A stretch of 64,000 nucleotides of DNA. Origin: Octopus sinensis. Lineage: Eukaryota. A program made the translations under genes and the position numbers. Location of the stretch: positions 36,580,001 through 36,644,000 of the forward strand of contig NC_043014.1 of assembly GCF_006345805.1 (NCBI RefSeq). Direction: 5' to 3'. This document shows, one piece after another, positions 1,946 to 58,290 of the stretch; position 1 is the first letter of the stretch, and every line of letters starts with the position of its first letter. Below the pieces are notes generated by a model. The model had not been told where the DNA came from, did no database searches, and saw only the letters and a program-made list of their open reading frames with translations.

Positions 1946-1994
1946 AGGCGGAAGTGTAAGGAGCAATCATCAGCATCATCATAGCTAACAACAT
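1946..1994 (-). CDS. Signal-peptide (leader) exon of an IgSF-cluster paralogue; gene body lies left of the window
   Basis: ATG...GCC T|GTAAGT encodes MLLAMMMLMIAPYTSA + phase 1. Same 49-nt length and motif as the leaders at 39.0, 53.5 and 58.2 kb; upstream flank 2060-2700 is homologous to theirs. Confidence 0.7.
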
Positions 1995-2059
1995 CGTTGA
2001 TCTTGAGAGACCAGTATAAGGCAGAACTAGAAATAATCGTCGGATCCCAGACACCATTA

Positions 2060-2700
2060 ATATTACGAAAAGATGTGTCTAATACAAAGAGTGTAGTCGA
2101 AACAAAGAGCTTTATATAGAGAGAGATTAGTGATAGCGTTTACAAAAATAGAAAGGAAAGCGCAATATATGTAAGCGTGAATGAGAGAAAGAGTGAAGCT
2201 TGAGTAGAGTTTGAGTGAAGCTGAGATTATTTCATCTGGCTGTTTGCTTCTCTCGCTCCTCTCTCTCCCTTCGTCCCTCTCTCTCTCTTTCTCTCTCTCT
2301 CTCTCTTCCTTTCTTTCTTTCTCTCTCTCTCTCTCTGTTACTTTCTTTGTGCTTCGAGAAGTCATGTAGATCACATGAAAAACGGTTTGACAGAAAGTAA
2401 AAACCACACACACACACACACACACACACGCACACACACACACACACACACAAAAACGCACACGCGCGCACAAATGCACACACACACATACACACACACG
2501 TATACATACATACATACAAAGAGGGAACAGAGACGGCCACTAAGAACGTGTGTGAGGAAAGCGACGACGAAATATAAAAGTGAAAGTGAAAAAGGAGATA
2601 AGAAGACAGATAAATGCTAGAATGAAAGAGTATAAAAAACTCCATGAGAAAGAGAGAAAAGATAGACAAAGACAGAGGGAAAGAGGAAGAGGTAGAGAAA
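2060..2700 (-). promoter_or_regulatory. Putative promoter/5'UTR block shared by leader-exon modules
   Basis: Shares GAGTGAAGCTGAGATT, CTTCGAGAAGT and GAGACGGC-ACTAAGAAC motifs plus (CT)n/(CA)n tracts with 39230-39830, 53690-54260 and (inverted) 57460-58150. Promoter role is inferred from position only. Confidence 0.4.
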
Positions 2701-2831
2701 CGGTAAAAGCATTCTCTTTTTTTTAATACAGTTAGTTTATTATTTTCCTAATAGATTTTCCAATACGGCACTCAACGGGGGGGGGTGCTGATTGGAGAGC
2801 TGCCTTAACTTCCCGGTATTTTTTCAAACTT

Positions 2832-3440
2832 AAGGCGGCGAGCGGGGAGAAACGTTAGCACGCCGGGCGAAATGCTCACCGGTATTTCGTCTGCCGCTAC
2901 GTTGTGAGTTCAAATTCCGCCGAGGTCGACTTTGCCTTTCATCCTTTCGGGGTCGATACATTAAGTACCAGTTACGCACTGGAGTCGATGTAATCGACTT
3001 AATACCTATGTCTGTCCTAGTTTGTCCCCTCTGTGTTTAGCCCCTTGTGGGTAATAAAGAAATAGGTATTTCGTCTGCCGCTAGGTTCTGAGTTCAAATT
3101 CCGCCGAGGTCGACTTTACCCTTCATCCTTTCGGGGTCGATTAAATAAGTACCAGTTACGCACTGGGGTCGATGAAATTGACTTAATCTGTTTGTCTGTC
3201 CTTGTTTGTCCTCTCTGTGTTTAACCCCTTGTGGGTAGTAAAGAAATAGGTATTTCGTCTGCCGCTAGGTTCTGAGTTCAACTTCCGCCGAGGTCGACTT
3301 TAACCTTCATCCTTTCGGGGTCGATTAAATAAGTACCAGTTACGCACTGGGGTCGATGTAATTGACTTAATCTGTTTGTCTGTCCTTGTTTGTCCCCTCT
3401 GTGTTTAACCCCTTGTGGGAAGTAAAGAACTAGGTATTTT
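2832..3440 (+). mobile_element. tRNA-derived SINE with three tandem 184-bp bodies
   Basis: Head AAGGCGGCGAGC..., B-box-like GTTCAAATTCC. GGTATTT recurs at 2881, 3065, 3249 and 3433. Confidence 0.8.
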
Positions 3441-54799: not shown

Positions 54800-56830
54800 G
54801 CAACACCCTAGTAGGATACCTTCTTGGCTAGTTAATGGTTTGGCATTCTGCTTCCAAAAAGTGAAGAAACAAATGAACCAAAAAACTATAGACCCATAAC
54901 CTGCTTAACAACTATGTATAAAAGGCTAACATCTGCCCTGACTGAATACACCAATAGTGTTTTAATAGAAAGCAGCATATTCCCTAATTATAGTTGTAAA
55001 GATCAGCTACTCATCAATAAAATGATCTTAGAAGATTGTCACAAACGACGCAAAAACTTGTCAATAGCCAAGATAGACTATAAAAAAGCTTTTGATAGCC
55101 TACAACATAGCTGGATTAAGAAATGCCTGGAAATGTATAAAATAGCGCCTACACTGCGAAACTTTTTGTCTGTAAGTATGAGATCATGGAGAACCACACT
55201 AACTTTGAACAGTGACAATGAATCTCTAAATGCTGGTGATGTAAAAACTTAATGTGGCATTTCCCAGGGTGATTCACTATCACCACTCCTCTTTTGTTTA
55301 GCCTTAATACCTTTCTCAAAATTGCTCAATGATGCACAGTACAGTACGGTTATAAAAGTTTGATAAAAATATAAACCATCTCATTTACATGGATGATTTA
55401 AAGCTCTTTGCAAAAAATGACCAACAACTCAAGGGCTTATTAGCAATTGTTAAACAATTCAGTGATGACATCAGAATGCAATTTGGCCTCGATTAATGTA
55501 CAAAAGCTACCTTTATCAAAGGAAAATGACAGAAACATCTAACGTTAACCGTGACCAGCAGAATGTCATCAAAGAGTTAGACCAAGCAGAGAGCTACAAG
55601 TACCTAGGAGTAATTGAAGGGGACGGAATAAGGCATTCAGTGATGAAAGAAAGGATCAGGAGAGATTGTTATCGCAGAGTAAGAGCAATACTCAAGACAG
55701 AGCTGAATGCGAGAAACAGGATCGAAGCGATCAATGTTTTGGCCATACCAGTCGTGACTTACAGTTTCAATATCGTTAACTGATCAATTACTGAAATATA
55801 TCAGCTCGACAGGAAAATAAGAAAACTGTTGACAATGCATAGAATGCACCACCCTAAGGCAGATACAGAACGACTTTATCTGCCAAGAAAAGAGGGAGGC
55901 CGTGAACTTTTACAACTGACAATAACAATGAAGATTGCTACAATTGGCCTAGACACCTACCTGAAAAACTCTGAGGACGATGTTAAAATTTTTCTCAAAA
56001 CATGAAAACAAGAAAGCATCATACTCAGTAACAAAACAGGCAAAGGAATATCTAAGTGAATTCCGAATACAACAAATTTCGGAATTAGACATACAAGACA
56101 CAAACGCAGCAAAAGCTAAGAGCATGAAAAACCGTGCTAAAACTGCCGCCTTAGATATTCTGATTGATAAATGGCAAGAAAAACCTCTCAATGGCAAATA
56201 CCCAAAGAGATCGAATAATGCCGATGTTGACAAAGCCCTCACCCATCAATGGCTAATGGCCTCTGGCTTAAAATCTGAAACAGAAGGGTTTATCATAGAA
56301 GGAACTACCAGGCCAACATATTAAACAACGGCAGTAGCCCAACATGTCGTGTATGCCGACAACAAAATGAAACCATTGACCATGTTGTCTCCAAATGCAG
56401 TCTTCTAGCGCCTACAGAGTACCTCAGTAGGCATGATAGAGCTGCACAATATATTCACTGGGTAATTTGCAAAAACCTGGATTTGCCCCATGAAAAAAAC
56501 TGGTGGGAACACAATCCACCTCCTGTGTTTGAAAATGACCACATCTCACTCCTCTGGAACTTCACCATTCAAACTGACAGGAAGATAGATGCAAATAGGC
56601 CAGACATTATATTGAAAGACTTCAGACAAAGAACATGCCTCCTCATTGATATGACTGTCCCAATCGATATAAACATATCTGTCAAGACCTACCAAAAACT
56701 GAGCAAATATAAAGATCTTGAAATAGAAATCAGAAAAATGTGGAACCTGAAGACTAAAACAATACCTGTTGTCATAGGTGCCCTGGGAATGATAGCAAAA
56801 GAGGCTGATGCTGCATTTTTAAAGAACAAT
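54800..56830 (+). mobile_element. R4/Dong-clade LINE, RT + CCHC + RLE, frameshifted
   Basis: NYRPITCL, IDYKKAFDS, GIxQGDSLSPLLF, YMDDLKL, YKYLG, CRVC..ETIDHVVSKC, NRPDIILKD...LIDMTVP, IPVVIGALG. Confidence 0.95.
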
Positions 56831-57069
56831 GTTTAAGAGAAGCAGAGGATCGGCGGGCGCTTTCTGCCTTCTCCCATCTTTATCATTTTGGGATCATTCG
56901 CCTCATTAATGTCTATGTCCAGCCCGCAAAGCTACCCATCTTTGTGCTGCCTCTACGGCAAATGAAATGAAATAAGTTTAGCCTCTCCTACCGGGTTTCT
57001 TTGCAGTAGCCTACTGAAGCCAATAAGGGAAAATATTAAGATATTTCAACAAATACTTCATACTATCAG

Positions 57070-57448
57070 TGGAGGCGCAATGGCCCAGTGGTTAGGGCAG
57101 CGGACTCGCGGTCATAGGATCGCGGTTTCGATTCCCATACCGGGCGTTGTGAGTGTTTATTGAGCGAAAACACCTAAAGCTCCACGAGGCTCCGGCAGGG
57201 GATGGTGGTGATCCCTGCTGTACTCTTTCACCACAACTGTCTCTCACTCTTACTTCCTGTTTCTGTTGTACCTGTATTTCAAAGGGCCGGCCTTGTCACT
57301 CTGTGTGTCACGCTGAATCTCCCCGGGAACTGCGTTAAGGGTGCACGTGTCTGTGGAGTGCTCAGCCACTTACACGTTAATTTCACGAGCAGGCTGTTCC
57401 GTTGATTCGGATCAACCGGAACCCTCATCGTCGTAACCGACGGAGTGC
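57070..57448 (+). mobile_element. tRNA-derived SINE
   Basis: GGAGGCGCAATGGCCCAGTGGTTAGGGCAG...GTTTCGATTCCC; matches 12003-12389. Confidence 0.85.
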
Positions 57449-58241
57449 TTCAGAACATACTATCATTGCATTCTGTCTGCCTGTCTCTTTCTCTCTCTCT
57501 TCTCTCTCTCTCTCTCTCTCTCTCTCTCTCTCTCTCTCGGTCGAACTCTCTTTTTTCCTCTTGGTGTAAGTTATATTCTTTCATTCTATCACTTCTTTGT
57601 CAATTTTCTCATGTTCACATCTTTACTTCTCGCTCTTCCTTCTCTCGTATTCTTAGTCGCCGTCTTTTCCCTAATCACTTTACTTTTCCCCTCACTCATT
57701 CATTCACTCACTGTGCTGAAATTCACTCTCTGCTCTGTGGTGTGTGTGTGTGTGTGTGTGTGTGTGTGTGTGTGTGTGTGTGTGCGTGTGTGTATGTGTG
57801 TGTGCCATCGCGCGTGTTGCGTGAGCGTGTGTGTGTAGGCGCGCATGTGTATCTTGTTCTAAGCCTCTTTCAATCTGTTTTTTGTTTTATATATATATAT
57901 ATTCTACCTGTCTACACCTCGAAGCAAAAAGAGGGGGATAAGAGAGAGAGAGAGACAGAGACAGAGAGGGAGAGAGAGGAAGAGATAGAGAGACAAAGAA
58001 AGAGAGAGACAGAAACAAGGAGAATGAAACAGAAAATGGAACAATCTCAGCTTCACTCACACTTCGAATTACACTCCTTCTCTCATTCACACTTACATAT
58101 ATTGAGTTTTTGTCTCTGTTTTTGTTGTTTGACTATTTCGACTTCACTTTTCGAGTCAGACACGTCTTTTCGTTTTATTGAGTTGCTGGGAGCCGAAGAT
58201 CATTTCACTTTCTGTCTAATACCTACCTGTTAAGATCAGGG

Positions 58242-58290
58242 ATGTTATTAGTTATATTAATATTGATGATGGTTCCTTACAATTCAGCCC
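58242..58290 (+). CDS. Signal-peptide exon, inverted copy, intact
   Basis: MLLVILILMMVPYNSA + C|GTAAGT on the plus strand; no plus-strand V exon seen in the window. Confidence 0.6.

Follow-up and report, generated by a model that had tools for sequence, protein, structure and literature searches.

A family of V-then-C immunoglobulin superfamily genes in octopods and its probably decaying copies in a window of the Octopus sinensis genome

Comparison with described receptor families

The CEACAM and PSG genes are tandemly arranged, small immunoglobulin superfamily (IgSF) genes whose products carry an N-terminal V-type domain followed by C-type domain(s), and they combine a mixture of transmembrane (TM) and glycosylphosphatidylinositol (GPI)-linked members with a fast, positively selected N domain and frequent pseudogenes. 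These features recur in a gene family of Octopus sinensis, in which one TM form with tyrosine motifs stands beside GPI-like forms, and part of which lies in the DNA analysed here, a stretch of 64,000 nucleotides (the window) that corresponds to positions 36,580,001-36,644,000 of the chromosome-scale contig NC_043014.1 (C18) in the 2.72-Gb assembly GCF_006345805.1, which has 13,516 contigs. The window is, in our view, likely to be a stretch in decay within a multigene family that is lineage-specific, encodes small cell-surface IgSF proteins and has been found so far in octopods (Octopus and Argonauta). Searches of the literature with the LOC identifiers of members, and with octopus combined with IgSF or immunoglobulin terms, found no paper on the family and no named family, and a 2025 review of invertebrate IgSF proteins makes no mention of cephalopods. 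Within the literature searched, this is thus an undescribed cephalopod IgSF expansion, as the initial annotation of the window, made from its letters alone, had suspected, and it belongs to a well-known kind, the tandem clusters of fast-evolving IgSF receptors of which CEACAM is an example. Little is known of how cephalopods, which are large invertebrates with complex behaviour, achieve specific recognition, and the cluster provides a concrete candidate.

The resemblance to CEACAM and PSG appears to be one of logic, not of membership. No homology could be demonstrated: when the family profile was compared with Protein Data Bank (PDB) sequences, CEA was matched only weakly (E = 0.016) and FcgammaRII at E = 3e-4, and the CEACAM N domain is without an intradomain disulfide, whereas the octopus V domain keeps the disulfide cysteines of strands B and F together with three extra cysteines. 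Butyrophilin/B7-like ectodomains and antibody light chains, which share the V-then-C order, gave the best structural matches to a two-domain octopus model (probability 1.00, E about 1e-5), but at 11-13% sequence identity the likeness is one of fold class only; unlike the butyrophilins and antibodies, the octopus family has no B30.2 domain by Pfam and no sign of V(D)J rearrangement.

Among invertebrates, the Alr proteins of the Hydractinia allorecognition complex are transmembrane and carry cytoplasmic signalling motifs. About 40 IgSF-like genes in tandem, whose V-set and I-set domains are unusual, form their cluster (PMC11999971), which is similar in size to the octopus family, although the phylum is different and the two are likened by layout only; octopus is not known to show an allorecognition phenotype. 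Snail FREPs, amphioxus VCBPs and teleost NITRs are also lineage-specific IgSF families with diversified V-type domains and a proposed immune role. The octopus members scanned with Pfam contain neither the fibrinogen nor the chitin-binding domain of FREPs and VCBPs and end in a short tail, and the octopus architecture of signal peptide (SP), V domain, C domain, stalk and GPI-like tail, with no somatic diversification implied, separates it from all three families. A last likeness is found within the molluscs, where the octopus family member LOC115221679, referred to below as the founder, shares its TM segment and a tail ending in ...GS[AST]V with CADM-like multi-Ig TM proteins from scallop and limpet; the same part of the profile is also matched, weakly, by an oyster protein named 'cell adhesion molecule 2/3-like'. 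These CADM-like proteins have more Ig domains, no expanded cluster of them was noticed, although no search was aimed at one, and the expanded octopus units have lost the TM segment and the tail.

Architecture, fold and distribution of the family

A complete unit of the family consists of five exons joined by phase-1 introns and encoding, in order, a signal peptide, a five-cysteine IgV-like domain, a seven-strand IgC-like domain, a short stalk and a GPI-signal-like tail. The sole five-exon unit complete in the window, here termed gene A, lies on the minus strand from 39094 to 22247 and has the following exons (a slash marks the splice point).

39046..39094, minus strand: exon 1, leader (signal peptide), 49 nt, peptide MLLVILMLMMVPYNSA, donor C/GTAAG, phase 1
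35504..35821, minus strand: exon 2, IgV-like (V1), 318 nt, open, acceptor cag/, donor G/gtgag, phase 1 at both ends
32104..32402, minus strand: exon 3, IgC-like, good splice sites, two 2-bp deletions
29725..29763, minus strand: exon 4, stalk mini-exon, 39 nt, (G)ELRPAIEGKANA, phase 1 in and out
22247..22326, minus strand: exon 5, terminal, (D)KLNGADIITKILAFAAILLFMGNLH-stop, acceptor ttgcag

The canonical, phase-1 leader and V exons that the initial annotation had described were thus recovered as it gave them, and the leader peptide is identical in the O. sinensis protein LOC118766816 (P0001) and in a protein of O. bimaculoides (P0002). The stalk and terminal exons had not been noticed there. 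The stalk exon is the homologue of GDVQAVRELKANA in P0001. In the peptide of the terminal exon, small residues (N-G-A) and a short spacer precede some 15 hydrophobic residues at the extreme C terminus, and this tail looks like a GPI-attachment signal. Annotated Octopus relatives finish in ...G.EQKAIRDNA / DKLSDANIITKILKFAATLLVIGHFH, and both pieces were found 3' of the gene A C exon; the annotated proteins P0012, P0026, P0031 and P0032 finish in the same tail.

The C exon of gene A was also found with the good splice sites attributed to it earlier, but not as a single open frame, since the quoted peptides lie in three successive frames: AKPHIKDLEL-stop, NPPF..FRCRAYVGSPFDRHAFLD-stop and WIENSF...ISCFVFGKTFSIPIIAK. 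Compared with an intact neighbouring paralogue, the exon carries two independent 2-bp 'TC' deletions, near 32375/32374 and 32293/32292, so that the FRC, W and ISC elements of the C domain are all present but are split over the three frames. Spliced as assembled, gene A would give the signal peptide, the V domain and 10 residues of the C domain, followed by TAA. In V1, three near-invariant residues are also changed (W to M, G to D and N to D). Because of the two separate deletions, gene A is probably a pseudogene, pending confirmation at the level of reads. The deletions are taken here to be real, and the fact that this is the only C exon of the family search that matched in two separate frames argues for real lesions in gene A, without proving them.

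The Ig fold on which the initial annotation had staked its proposal was recovered by structure prediction, as IgV for V1 and as IgV-IgC for P0001. The AlphaFold2 model of the V1 exon product (predicted local distance difference test score (pLDDT) 83.8, predicted template-modelling score 0.76) has 8 strands plus G, and its top 50 Foldseek matches in the PDB are all antibody V or VHH domains at probability 1.00, most with template-modelling scores of 0.53-0.65. It forms a two-sheet beta-sandwich with the C' and C'' strands present, which is the V-type arrangement, and domain 1 of P0001 does likewise. The P0001 model, although built from a shallow alignment of eight sequences, shows two confident beta-sandwich domains (pLDDT 80-92 over residues 40-220), and Foldseek returned 470 PDB matches for it at E <= 1e-3; antibody light chains, BTN2A1/3A1 and VCAM-1 headed the list, all of them ectodomains of V-then-C (or Ig-Ig) type. 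The C domain of this intact paralogue is predicted with 7 strands (pLDDT 77-90) around a C...W...C core; it is called IgC-like throughout, irrespective of the C1 or C2 subtype. The models thus support the view that the exons encode Ig-fold domains in V-then-C order.

At the sequence level, the B-F cysteine pair and the D-x-x-x-Y-x-C motif were readily located (ITCRSD ... CKDMGYYTC in V1; LTCRYD ... CKDATYYTC in a second V exon of the window, V2), and the corresponding columns are invariant or nearly so in 15 sequences. Three further conserved cysteines bring the total in the V domain to five. As a separate observation, Phe replaces the strand-F cysteine in two otherwise intact V exons, at C18:36568543-36568845 (L040, TYTFRS) and at 36263084-36263386 (L045, SYSFTA), and the domains that these encode would be without the canonical Ig disulfide.

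Searching the O. sinensis genome with family exons gave 43 V-like and 39 C-like matches, nearly all of them without stops despite 25-45% protein identity to the queries, and ordered as V then C in pairs mostly 1-3.5 kb apart. The family totals about 40 units and reaches far beyond the window: a main cluster at C18:36.04-36.88 Mb contains about 30 units in blocks of alternating orientation, a second cluster at C18:6.40-6.55 Mb contains about 7, and three unplaced scaffolds carry more, with about one third of all units on the opposite strand. The tandem cluster predicted from the window alone is real, and of the count of copies across cephalopod genomes that had been proposed as a check, the figures given here are those for O. 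sinensis. The right neighbour of the window is the P0001 unit, whose V and C exons lie 9.6-12.4 kb past the right end; the C exon of P0001 matches C18:36653608-36653910 with 100% identity, and the V exon can be translated from L033.

TM and cytoplasmic exons were detected once in the genome, in the founder LOC115221679 (P0004, 483 aa) at C18:35.95-36.04 Mb, beyond the last V-C pair, with exons at C18:35947253-36036254 in a gene of >100 kb. No TM exon was found in the window with the tails of P0004 and of the intronless copy described below as queries, which matched only low-complexity noise. The tail of P0004 carries an LHYAEL sequence resembling an immunoreceptor tyrosine-based inhibitory motif, on an exon that is absent from P0007 and P0010, as well as YENN, a run of prolines and, at the C terminus, ...GSAV; in Argonauta this terminal GSAV and the surroundings of a VY[ST]V motif are conserved. 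Outside the clusters and scaffolds, only two copies are clear, both without introns, one on C1 and one on C3. The copy on C1 (C1:167307238-167308287, plus strand) has the order SP-V-C-TM-short tail in a 349-codon frame, with 303 aa from the first Met. It is a copy of a founder-type mRNA, 99% identical to a 303-aa O. vulgaris protein (P0003), with downstream tail-coding sequence present but interrupted, and may be an expressed retrogene. The copy on C3 (~157889000-157889800, minus strand) is a partial processed one, in which leader and V are fused without an intron in a 266-codon frame and no C exon was seen.

Two head-to-head arrays at C18:36.28-36.53 Mb, comprising 4 minus- and 5 plus-strand units at a spacing of ~26 kb, form a very young subfamily whose introns are 95-99% identical, and the scaffolds C9019, C9543 and C12040 carry further units. 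The arrays could have arisen by the recent duplication of a block in inverted orientation, or they could in part be haplotypes that were not collapsed. A simple large palindrome was rejected for them, as mirror-image partners are not closest relatives.

With regard to taxonomic distribution, an exhaustive HMMER search of 1.84 billion representative proteins returned 43 clusters at E <= 1e-10, and the named clusters looked up at this threshold were all from O. sinensis, O. bimaculoides, O. vulgaris and Argonauta hians. In O. bimaculoides, many members carry LOC numbers close to one another and map to a single 47.9-Mb chromosome, and the weaker matches in scallop, limpet and oyster include the TM/tail part of the profile. 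Word-based homologue searches returned 2 and 5 proteins only, so that the exhaustive search was needed to reveal the family. Its members are named 'uncharacterized protein' in RefSeq LOC models or, by the automatic rules of UniProt, 'Ig-like domain-containing protein'; the genes are accordingly not hidden, as had been supposed, since the neighbours of the window already exist as 'uncharacterized protein LOC...' models.

Selection on the V exon and competing explanations

The tempo of change along a unit was compared first between gene A and the P0001 unit, which are colinear duplicates, the introns and flanks being 81-90% identical over ~7.5 kb. Identity between the two is 94% in the leader region and, in the V exon, 67% at the DNA and 44% at the protein level, in line with the conserved leaders and diversified V domains claimed in the initial annotation. 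The V exon shows 102 differences over 315 positions against 26 over 287 in the adjacent intron (P = 7e-13), with nonsynonymous and synonymous rates of dN 0.47 and dS 0.26. Divergence among seven young paralogues at 36.29-36.50 Mb is 1-5% in the flanking intron and 5.5-14% in the V exon, the synonymous and nonsynonymous proportions in the V exon being pS 0-0.08 and pN 0.07-0.165. V exons thus diverge 2-8 times faster than flanking introns. In the dN/dS analysis that had also been proposed, a maximum-likelihood codon model gave an omega of 3.39 for V, with omega = 1 rejected (2dlnL 13.55, p = 2e-4), and an omega of 1.19 for the C exon, which is near neutral (p = 0.68). Estimates over all 18-20 units (omega ~1.2 for both exons) were left unused because synonymous sites were saturated (tree lengths 11-12). 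Variable positions of V are clustered in the C'-C''-D region and in the DE and FG loops.

Units that adjoin each other on the chromosome came out as sister taxa in the tree of V exons: V1 groups with the P0001 V exon, on a branch twice as long, and V2 groups with the left neighbour of the window. The founder falls together with the C1 retrocopy and the cluster at 6.4 Mb. V exons are split or truncated in several other units, L043 and L050 among them. This amounts to evolution by birth and death in which diversifying selection acts on the V domain. Birth and death in tandem arrays, promoters and leaders that are conserved, and positive selection on the V domain add up to the signature of recognition genes.

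A mechanism that would produce this pattern can be proposed. Units would multiply by local tandem and inverted duplication and later be lost by birth and death; after each duplication, promoter, leader and introns would stay similar, the V exon would change faster than neutral and the C exon at about the neutral rate. The outward V domain would bind a partner that is itself changing, for instance a pathogen or some other surface molecule that varies. The founder, with its TM helix, its long tyrosine-containing tail and its position at the cluster edge, looks like the ancestral signalling form, from which the tail-less members would have expanded. The surface location and the recognition function of the family are predicted from its sequences, and the layout and selection pattern suggest an immune or neural receptor role.

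Several points weigh against the view that the window belongs to such a family of cell-surface IgSF proteins. None of the Pfam Ig families (V-set, ig, I-set, Ig_2/3) matched V1, V2 or the C exon at E <= 10, so that the HMMER check proposed in the initial annotation came back empty for the window exons, and of five full-length relatives only P0007 passed PF00047, with 23.9 bits against a cut-off of 21.8. It was this near-blank result that made fold prediction necessary; Pfam sequence models miss the family and structure prediction recovers it. The strand-C tryptophan is absent from the V domain, where Leu or Phe stands instead (ISLVKD, FRLTQN, LFLVQN), and the conserved Trp of the family is placed after the third cysteine (TCWK), with Met at this position in V1. 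The GPI anchor is predicted from a sequence pattern. The two 2-bp deletions in gene A might be assembly errors. An omega of ~1.2 for IgC would also fit widespread relaxed constraint, and gene conversion or recombination among paralogues can inflate omega estimates. Finally, the divergence between 'paralogues' could be partly allelic where the 36.28-36.53 Mb arrays and the scaffolds C9019, C9543 and C12040 are concerned; if near-identical arrays and scaffolds are partly haplotypes, the locus would also be hyper-polymorphic.

A more specific form of the multigene family reading is a tentative possibility, namely that octopods possess a germline-diversified recognition system of their own, in which dozens of GPI-linked IgV-IgC proteins work beside a single TM founder with tyrosine motifs in the manner of vertebrate paired receptor families, the V face is under an arms race or balancing selection, and the proteins serve immune recognition of non-self or recognition of the individual and of self. 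If so, it would act, for example, in the contact of haemocytes with pathogens, in gamete recognition or in self-recognition between skin and suckers. The cluster opens direct questions as to the cells that express it, the ligands of the V domains and the polymorphism between individuals.

Rather unlikely, in our judgement, is a neural or cell-adhesion identity code, in which the units would be surface labels for wiring or tissue self-recognition after the manner of protocadherins, Dscam or DIP/Dpr. Octopus is known for expanding wiring genes. The small two-Ig architecture, GPI-linked or TM, is common among neuronal adhesion molecules, the founder tail ends in a PDZ-ligand-like ...GSAV, and the founder's distant molluscan relatives are named 'cell adhesion molecule 2/3-like', all of which would suit such a code. 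Adhesion codes, however, evolve mostly under purifying selection, whereas a V omega of ~3.4 and exons that outpace introns point to an arms race or balancing selection; the frequent pseudogenes fit birth-and-death turnover, and the organization around shared constant exons is lacking.

It is improbable that the units are mostly dead DNA, that is, an exon graveyard with few or no functional genes in which high dN/dS reflects lost constraint. The window itself consists largely of relics, and the split or truncated V exons elsewhere and the C-exon omega of ~1.2 could be read in the same way. Neutral decay, however, predicts an omega of ~1 and equal divergence of exons and introns, against the observed omega of 3.4 and exons 2-8 times more diverged. 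Under neutral decay, moreover, one would not expect nearly all matched V and C exons to be without a stop at such low protein identity, five cysteines and the D..Y.C motif to be kept in nearly every copy, or clusters to be conserved in O. bimaculoides, O. vulgaris and Argonauta.

Still less credence is given to a variable/constant locus, in which leader-V-C cassettes would be spliced to a single set of TM and cytoplasmic exons at the cluster edge, after the fashion of clustered protocadherins or UGT1. Such exons do occur once, downstream of minus-strand units, and each cassette has its own promoter/leader module. Against this, eleven units have an in-phase terminal exon and stop codon of their own (gene A and ten other units, in which it lies 4-10 kb 3' of the C exon on the correct strand), the annotated proteins end in their unit's own tail, and the TM exons are up to 0.8 Mb away. 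Units that possess a terminal exon themselves, and of which many (about one third) are on the other strand, do not make a locus of the protocadherin type, and the model is largely refuted. Transposon cargo, or transposon-derived sequence that merely resembles Ig domains, is scarcely credible: the window is repeat-rich, with a retrotransposon relic and a mariner element among its leader modules, but copies of the family are confined to two chromosomal clusters and not dispersed, apart from the two processed (intronless) mRNA retrocopies, the phase-1 splice sites and exon order are conserved, and no transposon Pfam family was matched by the family exons and proteins scanned.

Decay and other features of the window

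Most of the units in the window itself are disrupted or incomplete, and the features beyond gene A are as follows.

1946..1994, minus strand: leader, divergent peptide MLLAMMMLMIAPYTSA, GT donor intact
13045..13368, minus strand: solitary IgV-like exon V2, open, acceptor tacag/, donor G/gtaagt, phase 1
39938..40160, no strand assigned: shared upstream block of a unit, with copies at 54565-54786 and shorter ones at ~3601-3856 and 18470-18700
45250..46892, no strand assigned: partial copy of gene A intron 1, 90-95% identity, abutting the right side of an assembly gap
51982..52029, minus strand: orphan leader copy, splice donor lost
53499..53547, minus strand: orphan leader module, donor intact, homologous to the gene A 5' end over ~0.8 kb upstream and 0.5 kb downstream
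54836..56836, plus strand: decayed non-LTR retrotransposon with reverse transcriptase (RT), zinc knuckle and restriction-like-endonuclease motifs, frameshifts and stops
58242..58290, plus strand: orphan leader module, inverted, donor intact
60479..60526, plus strand: orphan leader copy, inverted, splice donor lost

A six-frame search of the window with the family hidden Markov model (HMM), filters off, detected two V exons only (E = 1e-41 for V2 and 5e-35 for V1, both well beyond chance) and one C exon, in pieces, everything else having E > 0.4. V2 is 38-41% identical to V1 and has all five cysteines in common with it, which agrees with the one third of residues and every cysteine reported from a hand alignment. 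Neither a leader nor a C exon was found for V2 by tblastn, by a regular-expression scan for leaders or by the profile HMM with filters off, and a weak tail-like match nearby (10367-10311, E = 0.4) is unreliable. Its homology to the left neighbour's unit extends from the exon to ~0.65 kb downstream only, and a block of the upstream type survives at 18.5 kb. V2 is the only recognisable coding remnant of another unit, whose leader and C exon are gone. Just upstream of V2 there is a 774-bp direct tandem duplication with 99% identity (13758-14527 and 14541-15311).

Six leader copies are present in the window, three more than the initial annotation had listed; four of the six retain the GT donor and two have lost it. 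They sit in modules of ~0.8 kb upstream and 0.5 kb downstream sequence that are 82-88% identical between copies. The leader at 1994 belongs to the left-hand gene, whose V and C exons lie ~13 kb further on, at C18:36568543 and 36566398. In the sequence as assembled, none of the four orphan leaders is followed by a V or C exon. The leaders at 1946 and 53499 singled out in the initial annotation exist, with GT donors, but it counted too many units: not every leader marks one here, four of the six modules being without V or C. The pair at 52.0/53.5 kb faces the pair at 58.2/60.5 kb across the dead retrotransposon, a long interspersed nuclear element (LINE), and these four extra promoter/leader modules are duplication debris, head to head around it. 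The copies in the window are mostly pseudogene material, and annotation of intact genes in it should await read-level checks.

An assembly gap (N, 45136-45235) lies ~6 kb upstream of the gene A leader, between the gene A promoter and the orphan leaders. No family exon adjoins it, and the longest open run touching it, of 63 codons, has no family match. Its left flank resembles sequence upstream of the leader at 1994, and its right flank is the partial copy of gene A intron 1; as the flanks resemble different contexts, the two sides are not obviously continuous. A V exon of the orphan leaders could be hidden in the gap.

'Hero relics' had been reported at 3.6, 18.6, 40.0 and 54.5 kb. LINE coding sequence is recognisable only at 54.8-56.85 kb (plus strand), where Pfam detected RVT_1 (E = 8e-12) and zf-RVT, and where CCHC and PD..D motifs C-terminal to the RT were seen by eye; this relic is compatible with the restriction-like-endonuclease LINE group (R2/NeSL/R4/Hero). 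At 3.6, 18.5 and 40.0 kb, all that is shared with 54.57-54.79 kb, which itself lies just beyond the RT relic, is a block of 60-220 bp, and the open reading frames tested at these three places gave no RT or Pfam match. A conserved upstream block of the unit is a better description of them.

Upstream of the V1 acceptor, a long pyrimidine-rich tract (TTC/CTT-type) occupies 35872-36376, and similar tracts precede the V acceptor in many units (L036, L047-L050, L052), where they give long, spurious F/L/S open frames. Sequences matching the last exon of the O. bimaculoides isoform P0002 were found on the minus strand at 20649-20708 and 63499-63543, at corresponding positions downstream of gene A and of the P0001 unit, within a segment repeated at 89-92% identity (20390-21811 and 63232-63969); such sequence could represent an alternative terminal exon or an exonised repeat. 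Another RT fragment was found at 5578-6141, and a 308-codon open frame at 49529-50455 (plus strand; Pfam Transposase_1, E = 1e-23) encodes what looks like a near-intact mariner transposase between the orphan leaders and the gap.

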